A stretch of DNA of 50,097 nt from Girardia tigrina. Taxonomy: Eukaryota. Position numbers and translations under genes: made by a program. Each line of letters begins with the position of its first letter. The stretch's first letter is position 1. Under the pieces are notes generated by a model. It ran no database searches and was not told the origin of the DNA. It saw only the letters and a program-made list of their open reading frames with translations. This document shows, piece after piece, positions 111 through 48,456 of the stretch. The stretch spans positions 1 through 50,097 of the forward strand of contig MQRK01193996.1 of assembly GCA_001938485.1 (NCBI GenBank), given 5' to 3'.

Positions 111-290
111 TTGTTTATATACATCATCATCAGCAATTTTCGGATATTTAGTATATGAATATTGAATTCTTTGAATAATACAATTTTAATACAATTTTAA
201 TAGATACTTCTGTATATTAACTTTAAAAGGTATAGTGAATATTAAGAACATTTAGACAAGTCGCGTTTGAACTTTTATTACAATCACATT
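111..290 (-). mobile_element. Penelope-like element 3' (pLTR) remnant with a truncated hammerhead ribozyme
   Basis: TGTTTATATACATCATCATCAGCAAT (112-137) nearly matches the HHR at 31477-31502. The CUGAUGA half is present; the GAAA/cleavage half is replaced by the adjacent transposon end. Confidence 0.55.
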
Positions 291-10634: not shown

Positions 10635-11914
10635 TTAGGTTGGTCGAAAAATAATGGCGGTTTTTAAGCTTTATACTTTGTTTATCTACTTTGATATGTA
10701 TATAAATTTAAATGCATTAGTGTTAGATATTATTTTAAATCTTATGCTGTATATTCCTATAGCCATTACTAACATATTGCTGTTATTTTTTAGAATATTT
10801 ACGGTGCTAAATTAATAATGGAAAAAAATAAAATTCGAGCAATTTTCTTGTACGAATTTAAACTGGGTCGTAAAGCAGCAGAAACGGCTCGCAATATCAA
10901 TAAAGCATTTAGCAAGGGAACAGCTTCTAAGCGAACAGTGCAACGATGATTCCTAAAATTTTCTGATGGAGATGAAAACCTTGAAGATGAAGAAGGTCGT
11001 GGTCGTCCTATTGCTGTGAACAACGACAATTTGAGGACAGTGGTGGAAACAGATCCCCGTACAACAATCAGAGAACTTGCAGATGGGTTGGGCATTAGTC
11101 ATTCAACATTCCTGGATCATCTAAAACAACTTGGAAAAATCAAGAAACTTGATAAATGGGTTCCACATGATTTGAATGAAAATCAAAAGAACCGACGCTA
11201 TGACATTTGTTCTGCCAATCATCTTCGCAATAAAAACTATCCATTTCTTGATCGTATTGTTACCTGTGATGAGAAATGGATCCTGTATGATAACCGACGT
11301 CGATCTGCACAGTGTTTGGACAAAGATGAAGTACCGAAACACTTTACAAAACCGAAACTAACACCCCGTAATGTTATGGTGACAGTTTGGTGGTGTGATN
11401 NNNNNNNNNNNNNNNNNNNNNNNNNNNNNNNNNNTGAAACAATCACAGCGGAGAGGTACTGTCATGAAATTGATGAAATGCATAAAAAATTGAAAACCCT
11501 TTGTCCGGGATTGGTCAATCGAAAAAGTCCCATCCTTCTTCATGATAACGCTAGCCCTCGTATTTCAAAAGTGACTCTTCAAAAGCTTAATGAGTTGGGC
11601 TATGAAACCCTGCCTCATCCACCATATTCACCAGACCACTCGCCAACGGACTTCTACTTTTTCAGGCATTTTTACAACTTCCTACGTGAAAAAATTTTCA
11701 AAAACCAAAATGATGCTCAAAATGCCTTCCAAGAATTCGTTGCTTCAAGAACCGATGCATTTTATGCTGATGAAATAAAACAACTTGTTTCTCGTTGGCA
11801 AAAATGTATTGATGCCAACGGTTCATACTTTGATTAATAAACTTTTGTTTCTGTGAATTTGCACGTCTTTGAAGTTTGTGTCCCAAAACCGTCATTATAT
11901 TTCGACCAACCTAA
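10635..11914 (+). mobile_element. Full-length mariner (DD34D, cecropia/Hsmar1-like), TA-flanked on both sides
   Basis: TIRs TTAGGTTGGTCGAAAAATAATGGCGGTTTT / AAAACCGTCATTATATTTCGACCAACCTAA; element length 1280 bp. Confidence 0.97.
10818..11837 (+). pseudogene. Mariner transposase in one reading frame with a single visible premature TGA (10947-10949)
   Basis: MEKNKIRAIFLYEFKLGRKAAETARNIN...VQR*F...WVPHDL...TCDEKW...HDNA...YSPDHSPTDF. The 35-N gap at 11400-11434 preserves frame. Confidence 0.92.
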
Positions 11915-14753: not shown

Positions 14754-16131
14754 TAGGCTGTGTCGTAAAAAACGGTGTTTTCTCTTAATCATCGAATAGC
14801 CTTGTTTTCTCTGATATGGACAGTATGCAATATATGCACTACAAACATTAAGCCTTAATGTTTAAACCTTAATGATTAAGGTTATAAATAAATGAGTGTA
14901 AAAATGTTTAAGAAATTAATAACTTATTAATGTATTTTAAGAAACATATGTACAGTATATATATAAATACGTTTATATATTTTAATTTTTGTTTGTTCGT
15001 GTGAATGTTATATCCATATTTTTTGTGAAAAATGGAGTGCTCTTCTGAGAAATTATATTTCTTCTTTGAAACCCTTCGGCGAATTGGCATGAAAGGGACT
15101 GATATTCATTCAATAATGGAAAAGGCATGGCCATAGGATACTTTATCTCTTCGACGTGTGCAGACTATTCTCAAGGAATACAATGATGGCGAGCGAACTG
15201 CATTTGCGAGAACATCTGGTAGTGGAAGACCGAAAAGTGTTGAAAGAATACAAGGTATCAATGAAGTCGAAGAAAATCTACAAGAAAATTGTACAATAAA
15301 AAACGTGACCTTGCGGTAGACCTGTATATGTCAATGAAAATGGTGCATCGAAATTTAACGGAAGACCTTAACAGAAAAAGGATGCTGACACGCTGGATTC
15401 CGCATCCCATTTCGGAAGCGAACAAGGTAATCCGAATCGAGCGAATAACCGACATGCTGGAAGTACTCCAATCGAGACTAGTTATAAAGAATTTGGTGAC
15501 GATAGACGAGAAATGGTTCTTTGTCGACATCTTCCACCAAGAAACAAAATTAGGAGCTGGGTCGTACCAGGTGGTGATCAAATCCAGATAGCTCGAAGAG
15601 GTCCTATAGAGAAAAAGATTATGGCCATTGTCACAGTGAGTGTTCGTGGCCATCACTTCTTCAAGGTTCTGGATCGAAACCAAAGTGTTGATTCTAACTT
15701 CTATATCACTTTTCTCAATGAAATTGAAGCCATCTTTGCAAATTATATGTACTCCTATCCAATACGAATGCGGGACATGCATCTCATTTACGACAATGCG
15801 CGACAACATGCATCCCAAGCAACAACAACTTACTGGCAGGACATAGAAGTGAAGTTGCTGATGCAGCCGTCGTATTCATCAGACTTCAATCTAAGTGACC
15901 CTTACATCTTCCCACGTTTGGAAGCGCTTAGAAAAGACAAGAATAAAACAAAAGAAGAATTGGAGGAATTTCTTTTACACCCCTTGCCGACATTTCATGG
16001 AGAGAGGATGAAGGGCGCTATTGAACATATGTGCATAGACCTACGATCTATTCTGGAGAAAGGATGGATTATCTATAGTGTTTATATTAATACACGTATT
16101 TAATAATCGCCGTTTTTTATGACACAGCCTA
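14754..16131 (+). mobile_element. Full-length defective divergent mariner (DD34D)
   Basis: TIRs TAGGCTGTGTCGTAAAAAACGG / CCGTTTTTTATGACACAGCCTA with TA flanks. The transposase from 15032 has SGSGRP, WIPHPI, VTIDEKW, YDNARQH and YSSDFNLSD, with 34 residues between the second and third D. It contains stops and frameshifts. Confidence 0.92.

Positions 16132-22428: not shown

Positions 22429-22435
<7 letters not shown>

Positions 22436-22472
<37 letters not shown>
22436..22472. repeat. (TA)n microsatellite abutting a PLE 3' end
   Basis: Direct observation. Similar (TA)n tracts occur near 5574-5665, 24791-24812, 28857-28876, 30342-30368, 31385-31420, 42054-42162 and 46063-46098. Confidence 0.95.
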
Positions 22473-22479
<7 letters not shown>

Positions 22480-22558
22480 AGTCTTGTGAACGCAAGTTTA
22501 TTATTTCGAAAATATAATTTGATTAAAGCTTTTTTTATATAATTATTGGACATGTTTC
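22473..22558 (-). mobile_element. Penelope-like element 3' end with the 3' half of a hammerhead (the rest is in the N gap)
   Basis: Near-identical to 31421-31474. Minus strand reads GAAACATGTC-CAAT...AAAGCTTTAATCAAATTATATTTTCGAAA...TTCACAAGACTCAATAA into (AT)n. Confidence 0.8.
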
Positions 22559-22877
22559 NNNNNNNNNNNNNNNNNNNNNNNNNNNNNNNNNNNNNNNNNN
22601 NNNNNNNNNNNNNNNNNNNNNNNNNNNNNNNNNNNNNNNNNNNNNNNNNNNNNNNNNNNNNNNNNNNNNNNNNNNNNNNNNNNNNNNNNNNNNNNNNNNN
22701 NNNNNNNNNNNNNNNNNNNNNNNNNNNNNNNNNNNNNNNNNNNNNNNNNNNNNNNNNNNNNNNNNNNNNNNNNNNNNNNNNNNNNNNNNNNNNNNNNNNN
22801 NNNNNNNNNNNNNNNNNNNNNNNNNNNNNNNNNNNNNNNNNNNNNNNNNNNNNNNNNNNNNNNNNNNNNNNNNNNNN

Positions 22878-23741
22878 NGGGCCTCCCATCTCTGTAATGG
22901 TATTGAGCCTAAGGCTCTTTAGAGGGTCCACCCAAACTAAAGTCCTTAAGGGCCCCCCGATAGGCCTCATACGGGGTCAGTGGCCTTCCGCCTCTGAACA
23001 GTCGGCTTGCCAGTAACGAACGACCAACCATGGGACTTGATACCATGGCCGTACATGCCGTTGGCCGTTACGGTGGATGCGTAACAACCGCGAAATGGGC
23101 ACTTTAATTGTCCTCTTGCAGTCTTGTAATCGGCTGGCAGTCGGTATTGTAGGTGCGTCTCTTCGGCATCGTCGTTCGGCTGTATCCTCGGTATACTCAC
23201 AGTTGCGTCCGGCAACTGAGGATTGGATTGGTTTGATGTCGGCTCTTCCTCGTTCTCTTCTTCCAAGTTTTCTTCTCTCTGGGCGTTGGATGTTGGTGAT
23301 GATTCATGATGATTCTTCTGAATATGAATCTTTAGAAAACCAGCGGTCTTGTTTTCCCTCGGACAGTGTTAACATTGATATTTTCCTTTCTTCTAAAGTG
23401 GCTGGGCTTTCTTATCTCTCTTCTTCCGCGGGATTTGCTCTACTCCTTCGTGATCTCTTCTGAGATGCATGTTTAACTCCTTCACTTCCGCATATTGTTT
23501 GTAACAGGCATCCATCGGGCAGCTGTGTTCTTTCAGACGAGGTAGCACCAGTCTTAGTGGATTTGGATTCTTTGGATTCTCTTCAGTCGGAATACTTTCT
23601 CGATCTTTCCATCCATCTTCAGTAAGTTTTCCTGCAGAACGTCTCTTTTAAATTCACCGAAACTGTACTCGGCTCCAAAGAGCCAGTGAGCATCCACTCT
23701 GAGACATTCTACCAAATGTTGCTTTCTCCGACCGCGAGTTT
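22878..23741 (-). mobile_element. N-terminal fragment of a probable RLE-type non-LTR retrotransposon (NeSL/R4/R2-like) with two C2H2 zinc fingers
   Basis: GC-richer block. Minus frames give LRLVLPRLKEHSCPMDACYKQYAEVKELNMHLRRDH (about 23449-23522) and LKCPFRGCYASTVTANGMYGHGIKSH (about 23030-23105), separated by a low-complexity acidic linker. No RT is visible, so the clade call is an inference. Confidence 0.6.
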
Positions 23742-24041
23742 TGTACGAGTTTTGATACCTGTGACAATTAAATTTATATACCAGATTAGCTTGCAAAACA
23801 CAAACTGTTTTCAATTTGTTTTAGAGGAAACCTTGAACTTTGGATGTGATAGAAAATACTTTAGCACTACTTATTGTTCTACAAATACAATTGAGTATTT
23901 GTAGAACAATAATTAGTGCTAAAGTAGTCTCTGTCACATCCAAAGTTCAAAGTTTCCTCTCAAACAAATCGAAAACAGTTTGTGTTTTGCAAGCTAATCT
24001 GGTATATAAATTTAATTGTCACGGGTGTCAAAACTCGAACA
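23742..24041. repeat. Long inverted repeat: 147-bp arms with a 6-nt loop (AATTGA, 23889-23894)
   Basis: The arms align ungapped with about 10 mismatches. Both encode the start of the PLE GIY-YIG domain in opposite orientations. Confidence 0.95.
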
Positions 24042-24380
24042 TCGGAGAGACAAATCGTCATCTCAAAACCAGGATTAGCGAGTACTCGCAAATGCGTCGA
24101 TCGAGTAAGGTTCTTGATCATTGGTTATGTTGTAAGGATAGAACTTCATCCATTTCAAAAGATGAGTTTTCTGTTCTACAAAAGGGTTTTGATTCACATT
24201 ACGAACGACAGTTTNNNNNNNNNNNNNNNNNNNNNNNNNNNNNNNNNNNNNNNNNNNNNNNNNNCAGTTTTGTGAATCTCTACTAATAAGACACTACAAC
24301 CCATCAATTAACATTCAGAATGGGCAAAGTAAGGTTATTTCAATACTTAAAATTTTTAATTAAAATATTCTTTTTGCCAT
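23895..24380 (+). mobile_element. Penelope-like element GIY-YIG endonuclease fragment
   Basis: LVYKFNCHGCQNSNIGETNRHLKTRISEY...VLDHWLCC...RQFCESLLIRHYNPSINIQ, matching the PLE VYxxxCxxCxxxYIGETxRxLxxRxxEH pattern. Confidence 0.92.
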
Positions 24381-26249
24381 TATATATGTTAATTTATTCA
24401 ATTTTGCATAAATCATATTTTGTTTTTCTTTATCAATTTTTACAATGTTTATTAATTTGAAATATAAATTTAAATTTTTAAAATGATTTTAATGGACATG
24501 TCCTATAAAAATTCAGTTCCTAAATAATTTTTCTTTAATTTTGAAATGCAATTATAAATTTTTTTAATGAGAATTTCCGTTGACGATTAAATTCAATAAA
24601 ACATTATGATTTTTATTTTAGAACTTGGTTTTAAAATATTCAATAAATTATTTTTTTAATAAAACTTATTTCATTTTAATTAGTAAAAATATTATTTTTT
24701 AATTTATCTCAAATAAAATTATGATTTTTAATTTAAAAATATCAAAAATTTACAGTTCACCGAAAAGAGCATAACAATATGTATATATGTATATATATAT
24801 ATATATATATATCTTTGTGATTTTCTCCAGTTTCCAACGGTATCTTAATTAGATTGTTTAAACTCTTTTACTGACTTTTATGACAATTACTGCACAGCAT
24901 ATTTTTTGTTATACATAATACAATTTAGTATCAAAACTTCGTTTTATTTTAAATTTATAAATACCTGTACTAATACTGGTATCCCGGGTTTATCTAATTA
25001 GATTATCGAAATACCGGTTTTTACTTTTGACAAGGTATTGCAATCTCTAATCTTGATTACTCACGAATGTCAAGCTTATGTATTTGCTGAATCTGTCACT
25101 TTTTAAAAAGATCCATTTCGCCTCATTTACTGCAAATTGTGTTCTACAGGAATCCATATAAATGTCATGTAAGGGACTCGGAGACACCAACTCATAATTT
25201 TTTTTTTTTTTTTTTTTCCATGTGTAAGATTTTGAAATTTGATATTTTGCACACTCCTTCTAATTCCACTTCATAATAAAAGTAAAAACTTTTTGACACA
25301 AAGAATAAGTTTTCCGCTTTATTATATATAAAACAATAATGAACTAAAACAAAAATTACAAGGATTTAGTGAACATATTTCATTGTACAAATGGAAAAAA
25401 TGAAGGTTTTATTAATCTCAAAAAAGAATTTGTGATAAAGAAAGAAACAATACTAAAGTTATTAGAACTAACAGATATAGTTATGATTTGGTAGAGTCAG
25501 TAAATAAAATACTGTCGTAACGAAAACTGGTCAGACTGAGATATTGTTTCTTCATAAATTTGGATGTAATTGATCCGATTTTTTGAGTAAGCAAGTGAGA
25601 AAAAATTCTTCAAGAACTCGGTAAAATTAATCAATCCAAGGTGATTAATTATAATTTTTATATTTTTAATCCATAATGTATATTAAAATATATATTATTA
25701 ATTTAAAATGTTCTTTTTATAAAATGTTTAGATTTAATTTTAACCAATTAAAATCTTTGTCATTAATAATTATTAATAAAACCTTTTTATTTATTGTAAA
25801 ATTAGTATGAATTTAAAAATTTATTGATCAAGAAAAATGTCGAATAGCGAAAGCCTTTTGAGTAATTGTTGTCATAACAATTCTGATTGTGATGTTAATA
25901 AATATTTAAAAAATCATATTGATGTTGTTAATACATCTTTTATTTACTTTAAAATCTGTAGTGTCAGAGTCCTTTATTTTATTCATTATATTCATTATTT
26001 CTAAATAATCTTGCTTTCATGGAATTTGCGATACTTCTGTGTTTAGTGCCAACATTCGCATTATCGTCTTGATCATTTTTCTTTGTTCATGTTGTGCAAA
26101 ATTTGATGGTCTGTTCTAGACCAAGCTTAAGTATTTATATATAATACACTTTTTTGTATTCTAACATAATATCAAGATTACTAAAATAGTTCATCCTCTT
26201 TTGGAATTGAGGCTTCATGAGTTTCTTCGTTTGCATCATAAATTCTTTG

Positions 26250-29964: not shown

Positions 29965-31381
29965 TATATACTCTAAAACTTCTAATAATCCCCCAGTACA
30001 GCTATTTCTTCTCATCAAATTTTTTCTCCAGAATAATCCCCCACTTCTAATACTTTCGCACGCTGAAAAAAGACTGTCTGCGTGGCAAAACTGCTCAGTG
30101 ATTGCAATCTGATGTTTGTAAGCGTACCAAATCTGATAGAATAAAACCTCCGCCATGCGAGCTGATTTCAAAATGGGTTAATATTGCTTGGGATACTCTT
30201 TAAAAAGAACTGATTATAAAAAGTTTTTATTTATGTTTCTTATATGAATGAATGAACTTACTTATTGCCAAAGATGCACAATTTGATATCAAATTTTGAA
30301 AAAAAAATTGTGCTAGTATAAATCATTAAGTTTTTGATGGAATATATATATATATATATATATATATAATTGATTGAGTCTTAACGTATTGACAAAATGT
30401 AATAGTTATAAATAAAATACTATAAATCAATTATAGAATATAAGGCAACTTTTTATTATAAATTAATTATTTTTCCTTTTTATTTTTATTTTTAAAACAG
30501 GTAAAAAAATAATTTTTACAGTCAAGCCGAAATATTTACAGTTTGACCGTTTCCCTCATTTATATCCATCAAATAGGAATATATGTCAAACATGTACGAT
30601 TTACTAAATATGAATCTTCATTAAATTAAAAAATATACATAAATATTAAATTTTTTTCAGATAATTTGTCATTTTTAATGTTTCTAATTGAAGTTTAAAT
30701 TCTTTTTAATGTGAATTACAAAAATTATTTTGCTTTTTGCAATTTAAGAAAATTACCAAAAAAAGTTTTGAAAAATAGTCTGAAAACGTATTATTATTAT
30801 TAATATTATTATTAATAAAGAAAAAATTAATAAATAAAACACATAATTTAACATTATAAAAACATTTTTTAGAAATTAAAAAAAATCTTGTTTGCTTTTA
30901 ATTGATGAAATTCAATGAGACTCATCGCGAAGAACAATCGCCTTTAAGTATCCTCTCTATTTAAACAATAAATTATTTTTGTTTCAAATAAAATTGATAA
31001 TTAAAATGTTTTTTTTTAATTTTATATTTCTCTTAGTATATTTTAACAGTTAAAAAACATTTGAAAGCTATTCATTTTTTTCTATTTTTATGTTTATAGA
31101 AATTATGAAACATACATATATCTATATATAATTGAATCTTGTGAATGATAATTTTATATTTTTGAAAAATAATTTAGAAATTTTTTTTAGAAATAGACTA
31201 TTTGGAAATTCTTTTTTATCCCTAGCAATTATAGTTTAATATTTGTAAGTATTTGAATCGTGAACAAAGTCGATAATCAAAATTTACAAATTTATTAAAA
31301 CTACAAACACATTAACATTATTTAAACAAATTATTGAGGAACTACATTTTCTTTTTTCGCAAAAACCAGTTTCTACATTTC

Positions 31382-31420
<39 letters not shown>

Positions 31421-31422
<2 letters not shown>

Positions 31423-31736
31423 CGAAAATATAATTTAATTAAAGCTTTTTTTATACAACTATTGGACATGTTTCGATGTTTATATACATCATCATCAGCA
31501 ATTNNNNNNNNNNNNNNNNNNNNNNNNNNNNNNNNNNNNNNNNNNNNNNNNNNNNNNNNNNNNNNNNNNNNNNNNNNNNNNNNNNNNNNNNNNNNNNNNN
31601 NNNNNNNNNNNNNNNNNTATTGGGTAATATGGCAAAAGTATTTTAATTAAAAATTTTAAGTATTGAAATAACCTTACTTTGCCCATTCTGAATGTTAATT
31701 GATGGGTTGTAGTGTCTTATTAGTAGAGATTCACAA
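31421..31736 (-). mobile_element. Penelope-like element 3' segment (GIY-YIG tail, pLTR, hammerhead) ending at (TA)n
   Basis: 31630-31736 is the reverse complement of about 24270-24379, and 31421-31474 matches 22503-22558. Confidence 0.9.
31461..31502 (-). ncRNA. Minimal type-I hammerhead ribozyme (PLE-associated)
   Basis: RNA AUUG-CUGAUGA-U-GAUGU-AUAUAA-ACAUC-GAAA-CAUG-UC-CAAU: stem I AUUG/CAAU, stem II GAUGU/ACAUC, a palindromic CAUG in place of helix III, and a GUC cleavage triplet. Confidence 0.88.
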
Positions 31737-32194
31737 TTTTTAATTAAAATAGTTTTGATTTTACTTTTAATATTCGGGTATTAATTTATTTTAAACATGA
31801 AATTTGTAGTCAAATAATTTTTTAAACGTTACACAAAATATAATTTCTAATTAAAAATTTTTTAAAACATTATATTATTCTCGGTATTTAAGTATTTCCC
31901 AAGATTTTTTAATATTGAAACTTATCTTTATTATTTTGTAAAATTAATTTTCTTTTAGATTTTTAAAATTTGATCTTTAATAATTTATATTTTATTTTGA
32001 TTTTTGTCAAAGGATTTTAATTTTATCATATATAAATATTTAAATATTAAATTCGAAAATTCTATTGTTCGCCAAGATTCAAACAGTAATTTTTAATGTT
32101 AGTTTTATAAAATGTTACTTTTAAAAGAATGATTTTTTATATATTTTTTTTATTCAAGATATTATTCACTAATAATGGCGAAGTATTTTAAAAT

Positions 32195-32290
32195 TTTATT
32201 AGAAATTTTAAAATTTAAAACATTTTTACTTTGTTGAATGCTTATTAATAGGTTGTAGTGCCTAAGTAATAATGATTCATAGAACTGAAG
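32195..32290 (-). mobile_element. Diverged PLE GIY-YIG C-terminal fragment
   Basis: LQFYESLLLRHYNLLISIQQSKNVLNFKI, similar to QFCESLLIRHYNPSINIQ at about 24265-24320. Confidence 0.6.
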
Positions 32291-32644
32291 CAAGCTGGGT
32301 AGACACGAATGAATCACCAAAACATAGTGTAAAGTGCAACATTTGCCAAAAAAGCTGATGATGAGTGTTTGGTGATTTGCCACAAATATATTCAATTATG
32401 ACTTCATGAAACCTCATTCTTCAATCACAGCAGACAAAATGCTGAAGCTCAAAACAAAACAGTCGAGTTAAGTAAACAGGTCGACTTCCATCTTACTCCA
32501 CAACAAGAACTTGATTTGGAACTTTGCATCATAAGAATACCAAGGAGTTCTATGGGAGAATCTGAACACAATAATATATCGCAATATGAACTAACAAAAT
32601 ATCTTCACTGTAAATTGAAGTAACTTTTAAAAAAGAGTAGGAAA

Positions 32645-33994: not shown

Positions 33995-35257
33995 CCAGGT
34001 GTTGTTGAAGTCCTTTCAAAAACGCATTTTAAACAGATAAACATTTATATTTCAGAAAATAAAAAAATACTGGAATGAAAATTTAAATTGTATTTGAATG
34101 GAAGTTTTATGAACAATTTATTCAAAATGATGCACGACGGTTTCCAGACATTTCCTGAATGCGGCACAGACTTTCACTACAAACACATTTGACAGATTCT
34201 TCCAGAACTTCGCAACGGAATCCCATAGGATCTTGACACTTGTGTGAAGAGCATTGCAGGCTTCACTTTCTACATGTGTCCATATGGAGTAATCCAGAGG
34301 ATTCATATGTGGTGATGGTGGTGACCACTGGCCTTTGGTTGTAAAAAGTATGGCTTTGTCTTCAAAGGTCTTATTGATGGCTTGATAGGTTTAACGTGGT
34401 GCACCGTCTTGATAAAACTAAAATTCCCCCGAAGAAACTCTTTCTTCAGCCATGGCTGTACAGTTTGATTCAAAGCTTGTTGGTAACCTTTTATACTCAC
34501 TCTGTAAACAGCAGGAAAGAACACTGGGGCTGACTTTTCCATTTGCTGCCACTATGCTGGTAGCACTACGCTGGAAAGATGCTTTGTTCTGCTAATCGTT
34601 CATGTATAACTTATATAATCATCTCCTAAGCGATTGACACGGTTATTGTATCGGTTTCTTGATTAATCTACAGTGAAAGTTTTTTTTCGTCTTCAAAGAC
34701 ATTTACAATTCCAGATGGGCTGAACTTCTTGTCTTTCAAAACGACTTTACAACGTTCAAAGCGATTTTACTTCATTGTATTGGTTAGCGAAGATCTCTCG
34801 GTCAATATAAGACTCTTTTATTAAGATTCTTGACTGCACGAATGATCTGTTAATTGGAACACGAAATTATTAATTATGAACGGTGATTGATCGCTTTGAA
34901 TGGGCTGTGATGTTCCTTCTGAGGTGGGATAGATTTATTTTTGATTTTTGACCATTCTTACGCTTATCTTGCAGACGCTCGTTTGTAAGCAATTGTTTTT
35001 GGTCTCAATTTACTGTTCACACACGGGATCTCAGTTGCTCGAAAATTTCATTGTCAAGGTGGCTCCCGCCTAGAAATGTAACAATCTCAGAGTGTTGTGC
35101 GACAATTTCTTTACAAACAGATTGCTAAATATTATGTATTGATTAAAAAATGTCAATACTTATAACCTCTAAACAAAATATAAATAAATTGCTACATATC
35201 AACTTAAGGCTTAAATCTAGTGTCAAAGTCAATTGACAAGACTTTCAGAACACCCAG
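33995..35257 (-). mobile_element. Defective DD37D (maT/Bmmar1-like) transposon
   Basis: WSPSPPHMNPLDYSIWTHVESEAC...VCAAFRKCLETVV. Imperfect TIRs CCAGGTGTTGTTGAAGTCCTTTCAA and (reverse complement) CTGGGTGTTCTGAAAGTCTTGTCAA. Confidence 0.88.
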
Positions 35258-35811
35258 AATATGAAGATTAAACATGGCATCAGTTATATATTCATAAACT
35301 CTGATGATTGTTCAAAGAAGAAAAACTTCAATATGAATGCCGAAGGGGAAAATTAAAATTTTAAACAAAACATATTTTTTTTAAAATAAAATTTTATAAT
35401 GTTTTTGGAAATTTTAATTGCAGTAGGATAAAATTCATATAAATATTTTTAAATTGACGATAAATTTATTTTAAAAATCAAAAAACGTTCATCAAAATTT
35501 ATTGTGATCATTTGCAACGGATCAAAGGTCATCATCAAACTAAAATTATTAATGATAAAATTATTACGTGATCTATGATAATTTTTCTTTTACCCTTCTA
35601 TTATCAGTTAATTGTTACATAAAATCCTTATAATTATATTTAACCATAGAAGTTCATATATGTTCAATTATTGTCTAAAAATATAATTCAAAAATAATGA
35701 ATTTTTTCCTATTGTAGGAAAACTAATTTCAAAATATAAGTTAATCAATTGTTTCGAAAACATATATTATTTTGCAATATTGTTTGAAAGTTGTATTTTC
35801 ATTGCGTTAAA

Positions 35812-36930
35812 ATGAATTTGAGTCAAAAAGATATTTGAATGATGATAAATTACTGCTGGAAACGTAATTTGAATCCCCTCTCTATATGTAAAGAGATGAA
35901 TACAGCACTTGGAAGTGATTTTGTTCGTGAGAGCTCTTGCCGTTGATGGATAACACAGTTTAACAACGGCGATTTTAATGTTGAAGATCTACAGCGCTCT
36001 GGAAGGCCGTCAATGAACATTGATGACGCTATATTGCAACAGCTGGATTTGGACAAATACAGCACATGTCGCTTCATAGCACTTGAGTTGGAAATTTCCC
36101 CGGTGACAGCTCGAAATCATTTCATTCAGATTGGGAAAAGGTACCTGTGTAATCGATGGATCCCACATCTACTACACCCTGAACAAATGGCTACTAGAGA
36201 AAGAATATGCAATGAGCTGTTAGCAAAGCAATAAGCTTTTGATTTTCTTGGACAACTGGTAACCATGGATGAATCCTAGATATATTAGGACAATGAAGGC
36301 TCTCAAAATCATCATTCTTGGCGAAGAGAAAGAGACAATCCTCCAGTCGAAGTTCGTCGTATGCTTACACCCAGAAAGCACATGATTTCAGTTTTTTTGG
36401 TACTGCAAAGGTGTATTGCTAATAAAAGTTCTCCTCATGGAGAGACAATTTCTTTTGATACCTGCTGTTAACAGCTGGATCGTCTTGTTGCTGCAATACA
36501 ACAAAAGTGGAAGTGGCTTATGGGAGGAGGAGCTCAACAATTACTTACCTTTACGATAACGCCTGATTCCACACAGCTAACAAAACAGTAAATAAGCTGC
36601 AAAAAATCGGGGTAAATGTATTTCCCCATCCACCATACTTATCTGACCTCGCTCCCTCCGATTTTTATTTATTCTCCTCAATGAAAACGGCCATCCGAAG
36701 ACGAAATTAAAACTCCGTGGAAGAAGTTTAAGTGGTGTTATTGCATTGGGTTGAAGAGAAACCTCGCAATTTCTTCACCAAAGGAATTAGAAAACTCCCT
36801 GAACGGTGGGAGAAGCAGGTGGCTCACAATGGACAATACTTTGAACACATTAGAGAGAATGATGAAAATAACAAGAAATACTTATCTTTTACTTGTCTAT
36901 AAATCGGTCAAGACTTTCTGGACAGACCTG
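35812..36930 (+). mobile_element. Defective mariner (DD34D) lacking a recognisable 5' TIR
   Basis: MNLSQKDI*MMINYCWKR...EDLQRSGRP...WIPHLL...VTMDES*...YDNA...PHPPYLSDLAPSDFYLF...GIRKLPERW. The 3' TIR is GACTTTCTGGACAGACCTG. Confidence 0.9.
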
Positions 36931-37334
36931 CATTTCATTCTATCGACATCACTTACATTATACAAAGCGGTATTTATCAAAGTTAATTGTTTCGTCAAAT
37001 CATCCAATCTTTTATTTTCAACTTCCAGTATTCAAATCTTTTGATTGCAGTAGGATAAAACTCATATAAATATTTAAAAAATGCCGATACATTATTTTAA
37101 AAAAATCAAACTACGTTTGTTAAAATTTATTGTGATTAATTTATATAATTCATTTGTAATTTAATAATATTTAAATATATATGTACGTCATACATTTCCA
37201 ATTTAACTTAATTTGAAAATATATCATGAAAAGGTTATTCTTACAAATAATTAACAACAAGCAAAGTTAGACAACAAAGGTGTTGACTAGGGTCACCAAA
37301 TAAAATAAATTTCTATTAAAAAGTTATCACTCAC

Positions 37335-37554
37335 CTTTTGGTACTAATTTAGGTATATCCATACCGTTGCTTTTCAAAATGTCCAGGAGTTCATAGCGGA
37401 AGGCACTAATATCACCCTTTATTTCATTGATATCATCTTCCGTTACTTCTTGTTTATCTTCCTTTTTCTGTCGTAACATTAGGTATCTCATTACAAGATT
37501 TTCCATCACTTTTTGGTATCGCTGTTCCATTTCATTGACTTTGGTGACGATTTT
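37335..37554 (-). CDS. TRPC: Internal coding exon of a canonical TRP (TRPC / TRP-gamma-like) cation channel, C-terminal coiled-coil region
   Basis: KIVTKVNEMEQRYQKVMENLVMRYLMLRQKKEDKQEVTEDDINEIKGDISAFRYELLDILKSNGM matches the TRPC motif YQxxMxxLVxRY...TEDDxNEIKxDISxFRxEL. Acceptor ATTTTCCAG, donor AAAG|GTGAGT; 220 bp, phase 0 to phase 1, no stops. The symbol is family-level only. Confidence 0.93.
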
Positions 37555-38139
37555 CTGGAAAATATAATGTATAATAATCATAATTATTGATTATTGTAAA
37601 TTATATTTAATATTTATGTAAGTTTACATTTCACAGAACCTTATCTATTATATTTTTATTAGTTTATTTCCCAACAACATTATATAAATAAATAAATCTT
37701 ATGGACTTTCAAACAGTTAAAAACAACACAATTAAAGGCCTTTATATTCAATCCAGCTTTAATATTTAAAAAATAAATAAATTTAACTTTATATTCAATA
37801 TTATTTTATGCAATAAACAAGTTGTACATTTCTATCTACAAAAAAGTTAAATCCGGGCTCCCTCCTTTGTAGGAGAGTTAGAAACTTTAAAATGAGTGTT
37901 ATGTAATTCATAATAGGCACTAAAGATTTTATTATTTCTCCTTTGAAATATATTATTAATACAGAAGAATTAAAACAAAATAAATAGAATATTTTAAAAT
38001 ACTTGATAAAATTATAATGCAAAATATATAAAATTGTGTATGAATGTGGTGCGTTGATTTGAGTGTGTTGAAATTTGAATTGTGATTCTCACATCCTGTT
38101 GGAAAATTGATATTTTATTGTATATCAATTAGCTTGGGA

Positions 38140-39100
38140 GGAGTGCAAAAGTGGTAACACTCCTCAAGGGAAAGAGTGCAAGGTCTGATCCGAATTATTA
38201 TAGAGGGATCTTCTTCTTGAATGTCACTGGCAAAGTATTTGCTTAAATAATTGTAAATAGAATGACGCCGGCGATGGATGAAAGGTTAGACCCTTGGCAG
38301 TTTGGTTTTCGGCCGAAAAGATGTATTATGCAAGCTATAATTATACTCAGGTGGATGCAGGAAAAAGATCGATTTAAGAACCAGAAGGTATTTGTGATAT
38401 TCATCGATTTGGAAAAGGCATTTGATGGTGTCCCACGTGAAGTTCTGTGGACCTGCCTGAAAAGATTCGGCTTGAACGACAAGATTCTCTACCTGATCAA
38501 GGAATTCTATGAGAGCTTTATTGCCTCTGTGGAAGATTGTGAGTTTCTCATGGAAAGAGGTATCAGACAGGGATGTGTGATGGGACCTTGTCTTTTTAAC
38601 TTGGTCTTCAATGAAGTTATCAAAATGGCGATACTGAAAAGATTCGGGGGAGGAATTACCCTGATCGACGAGCATGGTGAAGAATTTCAAGTCAATAGAC
38701 TTAATTATGTGGATGATCTATGTATCTTCGACTCTGATATTGATCGTGCAAGTAAAAACCTTGATATACTTAGAAGCACATTTTCAGAATTCGGGTTGAC
38801 TAATAGTGCATCTAAGACGAAAGTCTTGTGCCTAACTGATGATTCGGGGACTGGAATATCGCAAGTAATGTGTGGTGACAAAGTCATAGAATGGGTGAGT
38901 AAGTTCTACAACCTCGGCAGTATATTGACCACATGTGGTAACTGAAGTCGGAATATCGGTCAGCTGTTGCGTTGTGGAATGAGTAAGTTACGCGAATCGC
39001 AGTCTGAGATTCAAAGTAACCGAGTTCCTATAGTGCTGAAAGGAAGAATAATTGTATGGAGCATTTTTCCGACAGCGTATTATGGGAGTGAGTGAGATAC
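38140..39100 (+). mobile_element. RTE-clade LINE reverse transcriptase fragment
   Basis: NYYRGIFFLNVTGKVFA*...QFGFRP...FIDLEKAFD...GIRQGCVMGPCLFN...YVDDL...KTKVL...FYNLGS. Confidence 0.93.
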
Positions 39101-40163: not shown

Positions 40164-40502
40164 TGTGATACTGATTTTTCTTCTAAATAGTATAAGGGAT
40201 AAGGGAGTGTTTCATTACCCATTTCGTAGTTGCATTAAGTGCGTTTATACAACCAAAAGCCTTCAGATTCACGGAGCGACGGAACATGGCTGGCCATTTT
40301 TGAGAGAGAAGCCGAAGCCGTGTATTGAAAAAGCGCACTCTTGCATCCGCAGCCGTGTAAGAGAATACAAAAATTTATATTTGACAAATGATTTCTACCC
40401 GATACAGAGTCTATGATTCATTAGCCTGTAAGACTATGCTGAATTTTATTTGTAATAAACAGTTATCCGTCCCAGTCTTGGGAGGTTTAATCTTATAATA
40501 CA
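40164..40502 (+). mobile_element. Putative LTR (solo or remnant)
   Basis: GC-richer 339-bp block bounded by TGTGATA...TAATACA, with AATAAA near 40454 and close to Gypsy RT. No clear target duplication. Confidence 0.45.
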
Positions 40503-40944: not shown

Positions 40945-41290
40945 ATGAGACTATTTACAGAATATAAATCAATATTCATGGCTGACAAGTGGGATGTTGG
41001 GAAAACTTCCTTAACGATACACAAAATAGAAACTCGAGGAGAACCAGTCTTAGTGAAGCCTTATCGACTACCACAACATTTTGAAGAGAAACTAGAGGAT
41101 GTCATTAGAAATTTTAAAGAAAACGGTATAATTGAAAAGTGTAGTTCTCCATGGAACTTCCGTCTGGTGTGTGTATGAAAAAAAGAGAAACAAGACATCC
41201 GAGTATGTGTCGATTTTCGACAGTTAAATAAAATTACGGTAAGAACAGCATTTCCCATGCTAAATGATGATGGCATGTTAAACACGTTAC
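40945..41290 (+). mobile_element. Gypsy/Ty3 reverse transcriptase N-terminal fragment
   Basis: HKIETRGEPVLVKPYRLP...GIIEKCSSPWNFRLVCV*KKEKQDIRVCVDFRQLNKITVRTAFPM. Confidence 0.92.
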
Positions 41291-42050
41291 AAGATGATCA
41301 TTACAAAACGTATCAGATTATGTGATCCTTGCAGCAGCTATGGATTTTAGAATAAAGTCAATGATAAAGCTTTTAAGTAATAATAAATATATTTTCTTTT
41401 AATTTCACTTTTGATTTTCATTAAATTATTTAGTTCATAGAAAAACCCTTTAATCAAAAAATTACATATTTTAGGTAATAATTTTATAATATAAATAAGA
41501 ATTAAATATTAAAAAAAAGAAAATATTTTAAACATATTTTAATTATCGATTAAAATGACTTTTTAGTTTTTAGTTTAATAAAATTAATTTTTAATTAAAT
41601 AAAAATATTCATTATTTTCTAAATAAAATGTTAAGTTAAATTTTGGTTGATAATTAGTTTAATAATGTTACATTTGAAAGAAAATAAAACGTTTTTCCCG
41701 ATTTTTGCATGACAAAAGAAAATATTTTTTAAATCGATATTTTGAGGCCAGTTTTTCCAAGAAAAAATAATTAGAAATTATTTATTTTTTTATTAAAGTA
41801 GAAGAATAAAATTTATTGATTTTACTTAATTAATCAATAAATTATGGAATTATATGGAATTAGAAGAAGTTTTGATTTTACTTATAAATTATTTTAAATA
41901 ATTATGATATTTTTTAATTTAATTTTGAATCAAAATTATTTTATTATTATAATAACTGTTTCTTCTTCATTTCTGTTTTTAAGTTGTATTCTTTCTTTTA
42001 TTGAACAGAAATTTAATGATTGGGTAAATAAAGTATGTAATAACCTATCT

Positions 42051-42091
<41 letters not shown>

Positions 42092-42162
42092 NNNNNNNNN
42101 NNNNNNNNNNNNNNNNNNNNNNNNNNNNNNNNNNNNNNNNNATATATATATATATATATATA

Positions 42163-42562
42163 ACGGATAACATGAAATAGTAGGACACCTACTATTTTAA
42201 TAGTAGGTGGAAAAAAAATTGAAAAGCCGCCCAATATTGGTTTACACCTACTATTTGGTGATTTTGTTTTGAACTTGTTTTAAACTTGAAAAATAAATAA
42301 GAATTAAACTGGAAAAATAAGAATTTATTCATCATAGATAATAAAAGCATCATCAGTTAATATTTCTTCACTATCACTGTGATCAGTTTCTTTTTGGGAT
42401 TGCGACAAATACTTTTTTACAAAACGTTCACCATACACATCATTTAAAAACGATACACCTACTATTTGATTCCACCTACTATTTTAATAGTAGGTGGAAA
42501 ATTTTTTGAAAACTTCATTACACCTACTATTTCATGTCCACCTACTATTTGATGTTATCCGT
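42163..42562. mobile_element. 400-bp MITE with TA flanks and repeated CACCTACTATT motifs
   Basis: TA|ACGGATAACATGAAATAGTAGG ... CCTACTATTTGATGTTATCCGT|TA. The internal palindrome CACCTACTATTTTAATAGTAGGTG occurs twice. Confidence 0.88.
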
Positions 42563-43307
42563 TAGTTATTTACGACATCAATGAGTTTTACAACATTTTT
42601 TAATATTACAAGCGCCTTCACTATTGGATATTTTTCTTGATCAATATATTTCTGAATTCAAACTTGTTATTTTCAATAAATGGAAATCTTTGAATAAAAA
42701 TTATTAATTATAAATTAAATTAAATCTAAACATTTTTTAAAAAGTACATATTAAATTAATATATTAAAATTTTAAATTACATTAAAAATTAAATAATACA
42801 TTCAAAAATTATTTTAAATCTTTTTAGTTTAAAATTAAATTCAATTATTTTTAATTAGTAAGAATCAAAGAAAATACCAATCATCCATCTGGGTAGGAGG
42901 GGCACAATCCGAATCAACACACAACATGTATATTAGAAATTTTAAATGCTAGGAAAATTTTTGAAAGAAGATTAAATTAAATATGCACAAATTAAAATTT
43001 ATATATCATTAAATGTGTTACGTTTGAAACAATAAATTACTAAAATTATGAAGATCTAATTAAATTGTTAATAATTAAAAAATTTTGAGTTAAATTATAA
43101 TATAAAAATTAAAATGTATAATTTTTATATGTTGCATGATTTCTAAAATTAATTTATAAAAGTAATAAAATAAAATCAAATATGAATATTTATAAGCATT
43201 TTTATTTATACCGGTTTAAGGTTTATAAAATAAATTGTTTCTCAAAAAAATAATAAGTTTGTTTAAATATTAGATTTAAATTTGGTGTTGTATTAATAAA
43301 AGTTTTG

Positions 43308-44150
43308 ATGTCTGAAATAACTCAGAATAATAATTCCGACGACGTTCCTAGAACCTCTAATATGGGGGTCTTTGCCACAAACTCGGACCAGCTAATTTCT
43401 AGATTAATTCCGGAGCATTTTAAACTGGATGACGATGTCGAAGTATTTATTACGAGCTATAATAGATATTTTAAAGCAGCAGGAGTACCCGATAATTTAA
43501 AAGAGACAATGGTGGTGACTTTGCTTTCGCGGAAGTTAATCTAGGTATACGAAAACACGAGATCTTTAGAAAGAGGTTTTGAAAACCGGTTACGAGAAGC
43601 GTTTTAAAAGAAAAGATCCCAAATGGATGTTCTAAGAGAAGCCGTAGAATTTCAAAGTACAACGGAGACGCCTGCAAAATTTTTTGCTAAAGCAAAGAAG
43701 ATGGCTGAGGTGATAGTATTATTCCAATGGACAGTCAAAGAAGTGGAATAATGCATGTTATTAAATTGTTATAACGATAACGAAACAAAGAAAGAAATAA
43801 AAATGAGGGATATCCAAGAAAAAGAAGAGATAAAGAAAATTATCAAAAAGATGGAGGAAGTCAAGTCAGAAATAAAACAGGTCAATGCCATAAGACCATC
43901 TTATGCCAGCGCGGTACAGCGTAACAAGCTAGTAAACAATATAGTTCCGATAAGAAATGGATCGAATAGAGAACAGAAAACCTGCTGGAATTGTAATGAA
44001 GTAGGCCACGTGAAAGCCCAATGCCTGAAGAAGCGTGAAGTGATATGTTTCGGATGTGGTCAAAAAGGCCACATCAGACGCGAATGTCATGTACAATGTA
44101 AAAGATGTCAAAGACCAGGCCATAGAGCGGAGGAATGTTATACCAAAATT
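43308..44150 (+). mobile_element. Gypsy-type gag pseudogene with three CCHC zinc knuckles
   Basis: CWNCNEVGHVKAQC, CFGCGQKGHIRREC, CKRCQRPGHRAEEC. The N-terminal part (PEHFKLDDDVEVFITSYNRYF) is separated by stops and frameshifts. Confidence 0.85.
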
Positions 44151-44561
44151 CGAGATAACATATTATTCATATCTAATGATCCTTCGATTTCTTTCTTAGA
44201 TCCATCAGGAGAAGCCAAACTCTAATTTTTCGAAAAATCTTTCAAAAGTATTTTATCTACTGTTTCCTTTATTAATTTTTCTAGAAAAGATTTAGAATAA
44301 CTGTAGTGTACCCACTACTTCACAAAATCAAACATATTGCGTCGCGTATTGTGTTTGCGTATTCGTCCTGTTGTTGTTTGTTATTTGTGTATTGATTGTT
44401 GACGCCACTGTTCGGGGTCAGTGTGAGTGTACTGGTCTGTGAATATTACTGTTTTCGATANNNNNNNNNNNNNNNNNNNNNNNNNNNNNNNNNNNNNNNN
44501 NNNNNNNNNNNNNNNNNNNNNNNNNNNNNNNNNNNNNNNNNNNNNNNNNNNNNNNNNNNAA

Positions 44562-44856: not shown

Positions 44857-45169
44857 TTTTCAAGATTAAAAATCGATTAATATTATTGATTACAATATTA
44901 AAGATATAAATACGGATTTACTGCTATGTATTGCGAGCATTATTTTTTTNNNNNNNNNNNNNNNNNNNNNNNNNNNNNNNNNNNNNNNNNNNNNNNNNNN
45001 NNNNTGTTGTTTGTTTTTTTCTTGACTTGGCTGTTTTATTTAATTATTTAAGTTCGACTTTCATAAGAATTAATCTCACCCAATTTCCTTTAGAACTCTA
45101 TTGGGTTAGATTAATTTTATTCTTTTGTATTGCTATTAGAGATAAAAATACTGCGAACTGAGAATATCA

Positions 45170-45417
45170 GATCTAGTATTTTTACAATAACCATTCTTAT
45201 TTAACAACGAACTTAGTTTATTAACACTTTCTACAGATTTAACAAAAGTGGAAGACAACGACCAGTAGTGATAAATTAAACCTTTAATCATGTTTCTGTT
45301 ATACTTAAGTTCACAAAAACTATCTGGTGAAGTATATAAACCTGTATCAGTTTGCTTCCTATAAATTCCAGTATCGTAACTAAGAGATTTTCTTTCAACC
45401 AAAAGATCCAGAAAAGA
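45170..45417 (-). mobile_element. Penelope-like element RT C-terminal (thumb) fragment
   Basis: FLDLLVERKSLSYDTGIYRKQTDTGLY...MIKGLIY...LLNKNGY, matching the PLE FLD...YRKPT...NGYP pattern. Confidence 0.88.
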
Positions 45418-45458
45418 TCACCTGTATTTATATACAGGTGAATTGATTATTAATTAGT

Positions 45459-45497
45459 GACCTGAAGATAACGGTAGATCCATCGAAATATATTGTC
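45459..45497 (+). ncRNA. Second-family minimal hammerhead ribozyme with a degenerate stem II
   Basis: GAC-CUGAAGA-U-AACGG-UAGAU-CCAUC-GAAA-UAUA-UU-GUC: intact core, stem I GAC/GUC and a palindromic UAUA, but two mismatches in stem II. Confidence 0.65.
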
Positions 45498-46055
45498 TTA
45501 AAATATATTTTTTAATGGATGACTTTGGTTAATAATAATAATAATAGTTTTTTTGACAAAGTTAATAAATTAAATCTAAATTATACAAATTCAAACATTC
45601 CAACATAAAAACATCGGAGGCTCATGAAAGAAAGAATTATAAAGTTTTTGAACGAGGATATCAGGTTGTTATTATGATTCAATTCAATTTTTAATAACAT
45701 ATTACAAAAAAAGCGAAACGGTTTGGTTGTGACGGAATTCCAACACTAACTCACTAAAGGAAATTCTTGCTCGATTTTCGAACACGAATTAACAGCGATA
45801 CCGCAAATAAAAAAGATTTTGTTATTAATACTTTTCTCTAAAGAATACGAGACTCTGGCTTCCGATATTCATAAATCAATTTTACATTTGGCTTATGATA
45901 AATATTAAATTTTCTATTATACTTTGTTGGGAAATATTATAAAATAGTAATAATTATGCAAATGTCTTTGCATTTACATAAATGTATCTTGAGTAATGTA
46001 ATATAATGTTTCAATTATTTCTTTATTATATATTTCTTTATTATATCTTTATTTC

Positions 46056-46101
<46 letters not shown>

Positions 46102-48456
46102 CAAAGTAAAATCGATATAAAAGGAATAAGAAAAGAGGATACGTTTTGAGGAAACAATATCATCATCAGGTCAACTCACACCATGTAATTAACTAGTAGA
46201 CAAAAAATAGATTTATTAATAAAGTAAATATTAATTCTTAAATTTTAAATTACAATATAATTGCTTTAAGACCAAATGAAAATAAAATTTTCGATAAAAA
46301 AAAGATTAAATCAAAACAACTGAAAATATAGTTTTCAATTTTTAAGAAATATAACTTATTTTTATTTTAAAAAGTGTATTTTAAAATGGAAAGGTAATTT
46401 AAAAGTTGTTTAATTGAAATAAAAACGTAATTATTATTGAAAATATTGTGATAATGACAATTAATTAATAATAAAAATTAATTATTGTTGTTTAAATATA
46501 CGGATTTTAGGAGAAAATTAAAAATACGTGAAAGTTCATGACAAATAGATTTTAGTCTCAATTGTCTTATTTTCTAATTACAAATATAACTTTATTTTAT
46601 CTAAAAAAGAGGTTATTTAAAAGTTGTTTAATTAAACGAAAATTGCGATTTTATTTTTAAAACGTTATCTTATGAAATCTAAAAATTATTTTTAAGCGAC
46701 TATGAAAACGAAAAGAAAATGTTATTTTATAGAATGGGGAAATGTAATTGAGACACGGTTAAATTTAAATGTATAATAAAACGGAAATTTAATAAAAGAT
46801 GCAACAAAATCTTTGTGACAAAATTTTAATAAAATAACTATAATTTTAACAAAAAAAAGTATAAAATTTAAATTCTTAATTAATTAAAAATATCTATATA
46901 ATGCAGTCCATGACACAGCTGGAATCAACCGCATCCCAAACCACTCGAGTGTGAAGAGCGAGTTTTGACCCAGATCGGGTGTCTCTTCGGTTCTATGTAA
47001 TCGTCCCGATGTCTCCGCAGACTCTCCACCGAGATCCGTCCTAGCGTTGTGACGATCACGACGTTCAATTGATTAGAGTGACAAAGGGGTTGCTCAGTCC
47101 ATACCGCGCTCGATAGCAGTCATGACAGTGATATTGCACTCCGTGAGCCCTAGTTCAAGAAAATTCGTGAAACGAGCATTCGTGTTACTTCCGGGTGGTG
47201 GAGAAGGTTGTTGATCTAAAGGAGTTTCATTCTGTTTTCTCTGTTTCCTTTTTTTACTTTCTTTTTCTGTGTTCAATATGTTTTAACGATGAAACATGAA
47301 CGAGCAAAAACTTTTATTGACATTCGAATTTGTGTAGCTTTCTACATTCCTTAAAACAATTTTCGAAAATTTCTTATTAAACCCATTTTGAGTTTTTTGT
47401 CATAATGAATTTTTTTAACTGAAATTGCCGCGACCACCACAATTACATTTAAGTTTAACAAAGAACTAAATTACATATAAAAATTAAAAATTTTAATAAG
47501 TTTTTATCAAGAATTAAAATTTCTTTTTAAATTTGATTTAGAAAAAAAATTGATAAAAATTGTTCTAATGAATTGATAAATTGCGATTTATTCGACATTA
47601 TAAATATCTGTCATGTTTAATTGGTTTCTTTATAAAAATAATTTACTGATAAAAAGAAATTATTTATTAAATTTTTTATTTAATTTTCATTTCCAATATT
47701 TCCAATTTTTAATAAAATTTATATTATTTTTGGAAAATGTCAATACGATTTTTTTAATTAAACACTAAAAAAAATTAATTTAGCAAAAATTTTCCAAATA
47801 ATTGATTAATGAATTTTTGCTTTTTATTAGCAAGATTTTTTTTGCATTAATATTGTCGACTATCTGGGGAATGATCAAGATAGGTAGAAATATTTAATTA
47901 TATTCCCCAAAAATAAATTCTACTAGAAAAATAAAAGAAATTAAAGAAAAAATACCGTTATTCAAAAATATTAAAAAAATAAATACAAGAGCTTAATTAA
48001 TTTATTTATTTGGTTTTTACAGGATTTTTATTAATTAACTACAATTTGTATCGAAATTTTTAATTAAATTAATTTATTGTTTGAAAAAAGACAATATTTA
48101 TGTTTCTTAATTATTTTTTTACGAAATAAAAATTTTGAAAGAAAATAACAGTTATAATTTGAATTATTAATTTGAATATTTTGTAAAAATGCGTTTTTCA
48201 ACTGAATAGGTAATTTTAAAAAATTTAGACAAAGAAAACACTTTTAAAATAAACATTAAAAAATATTATTATTGTTCCAACTTATTTCCAGGTTTCCCCG
48301 AATACCGGACAGTAACAATAAAGATATGACGCTCTGGAATTTTGTGCTAGGCCCATTTTTATTTAATGGATTAATTATCTTTTTAGAAAGCTTTTATGTA
48401 GGCTTTTGTAAGCTTTGTCGAAAGATTCCAACTAAGGTTTACTACAAAAATATATA

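Follow-up and report, generated by a model that had tools for sequence, protein, structure and literature searches.

The 42 bases at positions 31461-31502 (minus strand) of the 50,097-nt Girardia tigrina sequence analyzed here (GCA_001938485.1, contig MQRK01193996.1; hereafter the window) are, read as sequence, a genuine and intact minimal hammerhead motif. Very probably, a very abundant EN+ Penelope-like element (PLE) has left a dead, 5'-truncated copy here, an inert passenger whose 3'-terminal region holds these bases as a minimal hammerhead ribozyme (min-HHR) of intact sequence. We regard the copy as a passenger, and not as a functional host element, because it has no ORF, no tandem partner, and no promoter of its own and should be essentially inactive as a monomer. 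In active, tandemly arranged PLEs, the same motif would serve RNA processing and perhaps template recognition too.

Direct reading of the window places the motif within AAUUGCUGAUGAUGAUGUAUAUAAACAUCGAAACAUGUCCAAUAGUUG (minus strand, 31503 to 31455), where 31502-31461 reads AUUG-CUGAUGA-U-GAUGU(AUAUAA)ACAUC-GAAA-CAUG-UC^CAAU. The first-pass annotation of this DNA had transcribed it exactly, base by base, and had recognized in it a complete PLE hammerhead of the minimal type-I class; every core and helix feature is indeed present (Table 1). The conserved G10.1-C11.1 pair is present (31490 and 31475), the A15.1-U16.1 pair is kept, and nucleotide 17, at 31465, is a C (non-G). As standard hammerhead numbering puts C17 at 31465, cleavage is predicted between 31465 and 31464, the same position as had been proposed. 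Helix I has only four base pairs, three of them A-U. The palindrome ACAUGU at 31471-31466 is the candidate dimerizing helix III, with 1 bp in a monomer and 6 bp in a dimer.

Table 1. The hammerhead motif, the element that carries it, and neighboring features, in window coordinates.
Feature	Position	Strand	Remark
Complete minimal type-I hammerhead motif	31461..31502	-	helices I and II, core, extra U, GAAA, ACAUGU, C17
Helix I, 5' strand AUUG	31502-31499	-	pairs with 3' strand CAAU 31464-31461, 4 bp
Catalytic box CUGAUGA (core C3-A9)	31492..31498	-	direct reading
Extra unpaired U, after A9	31491	-	direct reading
Helix II	31475..31490	-	GAUGU 31490-31486 / ACAUC 31479-31475, 5 bp
Loop 2 AUAUAA	31485-31480	-	closes helix II
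G12 A13 A14 (GAA)	31474-31472	-	direct reading
G12-A14, A15.1, CAUG, U16.1, C17	31465..31474	-	A15.1 31471, CAUG 31470-31467, U16.1 31466, C17 31465
Conserved 3' tail of element past cut site	31425..31460	-	93-99% common to other copies, up to about +80 from core start
(TA)n microsatellite abutting 3' end of insertion	31381..31424	.	likely target site
N run of 114 bases between ORF tail and hammerhead	31504..31617	.	assembly gap or mask; left unfilled
End of GIY-YIG ORF and start of 3' UTR	31618..31739	-	5'-truncated PLE end; last 30 codons 31735-31646, stop 31645-31643
Older, diverged second GIY-YIG tail fragment	32162..32395	-	about 70% DNA identity
TRPC (TRP-gamma-like) coding exon	37331..37560	-	TRP-gamma residues 730-792, E 5e-17

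To gauge how readily such a motif arises, we used a descriptor consisting of the core, zero or one inserted nucleotide, helix II of at least 4 bp, GAAA, a palindromic helix III, non-G17, and a 4-bp helix I. The full descriptor matched once in the window, at 31461-31502, and none of 400 windows of 50 kb simulated with a first-order Markov model contained a match; for a loose pattern, 0.26 matches are expected per window. The Infernal search with hammerhead models that the first-pass annotation had proposed was negative: the Rfam hammerhead families gave no match in the window at gathering score, and Hammerhead_1, _3, _II, HH9, and HH10 gave none on 31380-31520 even at E<=10. We do not hold this result against the motif: the Rfam models carry a helix III hairpin, which the motif does not have. 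Our own covariance model, whose seed alignment contains this copy, scores 31461-31502 at 50.3 bits.

The hammerhead belongs to the end of a PLE. Upstream of it and in the same orientation, as had been claimed, lies the tail of a GIY-YIG ORF, whose last codons (31735-31646, minus strand) encode ..CESLLIRHYNPSINIQNGQSKVISILKIFN* and whose stop codon precedes the hammerhead by ~130 nt. Over 31629-31736 this tail shares 96% identity with the end of the GIY-YIG-like ORF at 23840-24380 (24270-24380, plus strand). The N run at 31504-31617 sets in a single base before the motif; N runs were left unfilled, and distances over this one were compared by coordinates in other copies. In the gap-free copies L001, L011, and L013 the GIY-YIG tail occupies -228 to -109 relative to the hammerhead, and in L029 an exact hammerhead (2068-2035) follows the end of the ORF at 2207; because these four gap-free copies join both parts, the linkage across the N run is real. 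In gap-free copies the tail is 11 nt nearer to the hammerhead, so the gap is over-estimated by about 11 nt. Homology ends near 31739, which makes the PLE copy a 3' fragment of about 0.3 kb. The insertion abuts (TA)n, a sequence among the preferred PLE targets (PMC8557442). The motif had been assigned to a Penelope-like pLTR, a term that does not fit this locus: there is no direct-repeat pair round an ORF here, only a solo, 5'-truncated 3' fragment of ~0.3 kb. At the locus, no second same-strand copy flanks an ORF, the ORF remnant being the last 30 codons only, and no head-to-tail tandem unit with a hammerhead was found at 31-32 kb. Downstream of the older GIY-YIG fragment at 32162-32395, no hammerhead was detectable.

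Pfam searches of the window's own short GIY-YIG pieces gave no match, hence a longer ORF from another copy was needed to place the element. The 436-aa ORF of copy L032 ends in the same tail and matches Pfam RVT_1 above threshold (30.7 bits), and in L035 an RT-plus-tail ORF is followed by the hammerhead. Homologs of the L032 ORF (2,490 proteins at E<=1e-5, the lowest E being 1e-232) have RVT_1 along with a GIY-YIG domain at the C terminus (PF01541; 25.7 bits in P0061). The predicted architecture is therefore that of a canonical EN+ PLE, RT then C-terminal GIY-YIG, at the level of the family; the interiors of full-length elements are N in the copies fetched. Copies with apparent open frames of 829-1,397 aa proved to be N runs and were rejected.

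Across the 1.43-Gb genome, the GIY-YIG piece returned 43,868 first-look candidates. A 40-mer of the motif occurred at no fewer than 6,654 places with up to three mismatches, the reversed control at none, and an exact 35-mer in 1,193 copies. A sister subfamily differs in one loop-2 base (AUGUAA vs. AUAUAA in the window) and is apparently the more numerous, with 3,427 copies when the loop is left free vs. 1,193 exact. The 5' ends of the copies vary, from -5 to -244 relative to the core, and their 3' ends are fixed, at +80 or at +113 to +130, which is the footprint of target-primed reverse transcription. Copies also form inverted pairs about 150 nt apart and have (TA)n at the 3' end. All four features have been described for PLEs (PMC8557442, PMC11167929), and like other EN+ PLEs the family has 5'-truncated copies, copies inverted next to each other, and a tail whose targets are AT-rich or (TA)n. 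When copies were counted with either the core or the loop left free, as a test of selection, variability in the core was no lower than in the loop: differences confined to the seven core positions are seen in 191 copies, per site about as many as in the loop. Since the core varies about as much as the loop, genomic copies decay neutrally, as dead insertions should, and the comparison lends function no support.

Many pairwise alignments ended at -5, where contigs diverged, which raised the idea of a hammerhead-plus-tail cassette hopping between unrelated elements. This was rejected, as what lies upstream in those other copies proved to be variant 3' UTRs of PLE subfamilies. Dozens of contigs have one of their ends no farther than ~50 nt from the hammerhead, and N runs interrupt the PLE body in several of the fetched copies. 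For annotation, this means that the PLE repeat breaks short-read assemblies exactly at the motif.

The window holds further remains of such elements. At 112-231 (minus strand) lies a partial copy in which a PLE 3'-UTR subfamily variant is joined to the same hammerhead's 5' half; the copy is broken off within the helix II 3' strand at 112, with unrelated sequence beyond (111-1), and either a deletion or an insertion into the ribozyme may account for the break. At 22429-22558 (minus strand) the 3' part of the hammerhead, from G12 on, recurs with (TA)n and a longer tail; the 5' part of this second copy falls in the N run 22559-22878. The place expected for the GIY-YIG tail upstream of this second copy is occupied by an ORF (22967-23266, minus strand) that has a Cys/His motif in common with another at 40165-40416, plus strand (CPFRGC...HGIKSH and FRSCIKC...HGATEH, respectively); Pfam gave no match for either. 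Within 23554-24286, GIY-YIG ORF starts are inverted head to head round about 23830-23900, the usual arrangement of inverted 5'-truncated PLEs, and the 3' region of the plus-strand copy (24380-24520) has no intact hammerhead, only the remnant ..GGACATGTCC...

We also searched the genome for hammerheads of other families. A pattern excluding the window's family recovered 5,815 further motifs vs. 19 in the control, which fall into at least eight further families. Among the 100 motifs listed, these families have differing helix II sequences and nearly always a U between A9 and G10.1, and helix III is palindromic in 84 by hand count, where ~6 are expected by chance; the palindromes seen were ACAUGU, ACGCGU, AUAUAU, AUUAAU, AUGCAU, and ACUAGU. 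Thirteen representatives were aligned, omitting three decayed or duplicate copies (L045, L051, and L053). In this alignment 91.6% of cells are paired vs. 63% in shuffles, none of 500 of which reached that value, and the covariation score is 0.883 vs. 0.252, slid controls giving at most 0.21. All three helices covary between the PLE families of the genome; helix II is biased by a filter that required at least 4 bp, and helices I and III are unselected. The G10.1-C11.1 pair is G-C in all 13 representatives, a pair that the search pattern had required. With at least 12,000 motifs, nine or more families, and six helix III palindromes, the genome is a rich natural data set, which could help decide what PLE hammerheads serve, catalysis or recognition by the element's protein.

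Two decayed hammerheads of another PLE family, with GAC/GUC in helix I, also lie in the window. The one at 45457-45499 (plus strand) scores 29.5 bits (E 4e-7) with our own model and has an A at 10.1, and the one at 46133-46174 (minus strand) scores 15.7 bits and has G12 replaced by A. A PLE-like ORF fragment lies at 45136-45402 (minus strand).

Computed folds were examined for the monomer and the dimer. The hammerhead fold of the monomer lies at +3.2 kcal/mol and the double-hammerhead arrangement at -10.2 kcal/mol. The unconstrained monomer has a minimum free energy (MFE) of -6.4 kcal/mol with core bases paired instead, and in the unconstrained dimer ensemble helix III pairs at a probability of 0.003. 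With the core held open, the two helix II hairpins persist in the dimer MFE structure, as does the intermolecular helix III of 6 bp. These thermodynamics agree with the dimer model without proving it.

Published work bears on how the motif may operate. Cleavage of min-HHRs in vitro is very low and occurs as dimers only (PMC4209133), and cleavage of PLE hammerheads as dimers is attributed to Lunse et al. 2017 in the passage of PMC6765202 that cites it. The first-pass annotation had described PLE hammerheads as cleaving mainly as dimers, with helix III reduced to a palindromic tetranucleotide, in accord with the literature (PMC4209133, PMC6765202). By analogy with these reports, two motifs in active tandem elements would pair through ACAUGU to form a double hammerhead, in which each core would cut the other copy after C17, slowly. 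The cutting would probably be helped by the element's own protein, which would trim PLE transcripts in this way.

RNA data were also inspected. In two leaf-litter metatranscriptomes contigs cover the motif, and one contig from each spans the cut site uncut; a contig from a wastewater RNA run covers the motif without bridging the cut site. No pile-up of contig ends was seen at the cut site in the assembled contigs of the RNA runs, which cannot show RNA ends. These contigs show at most presence in RNA libraries and are silent on cleavage. The PLE tail is present in leaf-litter, wastewater, and freshwater metatranscriptome or metagenome runs, which hints at a common invertebrate of soil or litter as the host.

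A different reading of the motif's role, which we consider unlikely although it is the strongest competitor, is that it is kept mainly as a 3'-terminal RNA module, a structure or protein-binding element that the PLE RT/endonuclease recognizes and primes on, catalysis being dispensable or vestigial. Comparison of diverged subfamilies gives identities of 70% for the upstream UTR, 93% for the 41-nt tail past the cut site, and 96% for the hammerhead, the last value being inflated because some copies were fetched via the hammerhead itself; the hammerhead and tail are thus a module far better conserved than the adjoining UTR. Consistent with such a module, insertion 3' ends lie 45-95 nt past the cut site and not at it, and PLE clades without hammerheads proliferate well (PMC8557442). 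The Poseidon element PAc of Anolis carolinensis (Frangieh et al. 2024), the one PLE studied biochemically, points the same way: its hammerhead needs the element's protein to cleave, insertion in vitro tolerates mutation of the hammerhead, no RNA-seq read ends were found at the cut site, and reverse transcription initiates internally near the 3' end (PMC11167929). However, the 11 nucleotides of the catalytic core, G10.1-C11.1, and non-G17 are invariant over at least nine families while every helix changes, which is the pattern that catalysis, but not protein binding alone, would lead one to expect.

It is very improbable that the locus is a nonautonomous tandem retrozyme instead of a PLE copy. 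Animal retrozymes, which stem from PLE pLTRs, do bear type-I hammerheads of this same sort (bioRxiv 10.64898/2026.07.22.740005), and many copies here have only the hammerhead and tail in common. Yet a GIY-YIG ORF tail lies directly upstream, both at the locus and in gap-free copies, the unit is not tandemly repeated at the locus, and the alternative upstream sequences are PLE-subfamily 3'-UTR variants that were fetched through the GIY-YIG protein.

The location of this PLE copy relative to a host gene was then considered. The TRPC exon at 37560-37331, which has 566 library matches at E<=0.001, ends in the consensus donor AAG/GTGAGT at 37331/37330. The first-pass annotation had placed the hammerhead downstream of this donor and on the same strand, possibly within the TRPC pre-mRNA. 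Position and strand are confirmed, at a distance of 5.8 kb; a comparison of 12 homologs with the window found only exon 37560-37331 and no TRPC exon downstream. An intronic position in TRPC is plausible. The region is transposon-saturated: mariner/Tc1-like transposase fragments occur at 3934-4476, 7187-7841, 11016-11837, 15289-16103, and 34118-36902, LINE-like RT at 8749-9459 and 38262-38945, and pieces of LTR-element gag/pol at 40945-44225.

A sense hammerhead in a TRPC intron might cut the pre-mRNA, alone or paired with PLE transcripts, and so lower TRPC expression. The same-strand position past a consensus donor, a motif without mismatch to its 1,193-copy exact variant, and the PLE tail sequences in RNA libraries would fit such an action. 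Against it stand the missing downstream exon, the unstable monomer fold, and the nearest same-strand partners, which are 9 kb off (22558, mostly masked) or broken (143-112), and the copy is one of thousands of neutral-looking insertions; we therefore rate this action on the host as extremely unlikely. Just as unlikely is the reading in which an intact sense min-HHR inside a TRPC intron is cut, or cuts the pre-mRNA, by pairing in trans via ACAUGU with the abundant PLE transcripts. If that were true, the genome's retrotransposon load would dampen a host ion-channel gene post-transcriptionally.

Chance resemblance within AT-rich repeat DNA, to which the AT-rich surroundings and the likeness of the CUGAUGAUGAUG stretch to a simple trinucleotide repeat might point, is refuted by the absence of descriptor matches in the 400 simulated windows, the 6,654 genome copies vs. 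none for the reversed control, the excess of other-family motifs over their control, and helices that covary between PLE families.

Amniote introns hold the hammerheads HH9 and HH10, which are single-copy, conserved between species, and stable as monomers. Both lie in sense orientation, and the window motif is likewise sense to TRPC and in a candidate intronic position; it differs from them in being a repeat copy with an unstable monomer fold. The canonical type-I hammerheads (Rfam Hammerhead_1, Schistosoma SM-alpha, and newt satellite 2) and animal non-LTR retrozymes have the same core, topology, short palindromic helix III, and dimer logic. Compared with these, the window motif is without loop 1/loop 2 tertiary contacts, has no tandem array at its locus, and is left unscored by the Rfam models. 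The practical point for annotation is that Rfam models overlook the PLE min-HHR class.

The PAc element resembles the window family more closely, both being EN+ PLEs that target AT-rich DNA, have their hammerhead in the repeat region, and continue beyond it in a genomic "tail" (PMC11167929). In PAc the ORF starts inside the hammerhead, whereas in the window family, known from sequence, the hammerhead lies ~130 nt past the stop of the preceding unit's ORF.

The closest match is to the min-HHRs of Cervera & de la Pena 2014, which have a helix I of 4-5 bp, an unpaired nucleotide before helix II, G10.1-C11.1, and palindromic 15.x-16.x positions (PMC4209133). In metazoan genomes they occur as thousands of mostly solo copies, with opposite-strand pairs 100-700 bp apart, and their families are full of compensatory changes (PMC4209133). 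Like these, the window motif is of type I with an open 4-bp helix I, a full core, and an unpaired nucleotide between A9 and G10.1; G10.1-C11.1, A15.1-U16.1 round a palindromic CAUG, and a PLE-flanking 3' location are also common to both, as are copies that are mostly solo and number in the thousands, inverted pairs 100-700 bp apart, and several covarying families per genome. The window motif differs in its helix II, which has 5 bp; that of the Schistosoma families has 7-8 bp and that of Drosophila virilis 6 bp. Judged by its sequence, the family of 31461-31502 bears every structural and genomic mark of that class, cleavage behavior aside. The family and its host genome may be uncatalogued, with no difference in kind from the published min-HHRs. 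The single copy at 31461-31502 matters little by itself: the class has been known since 2014, and the window motif is a real but ordinary member of it, one of >6,600 near-identical copies.
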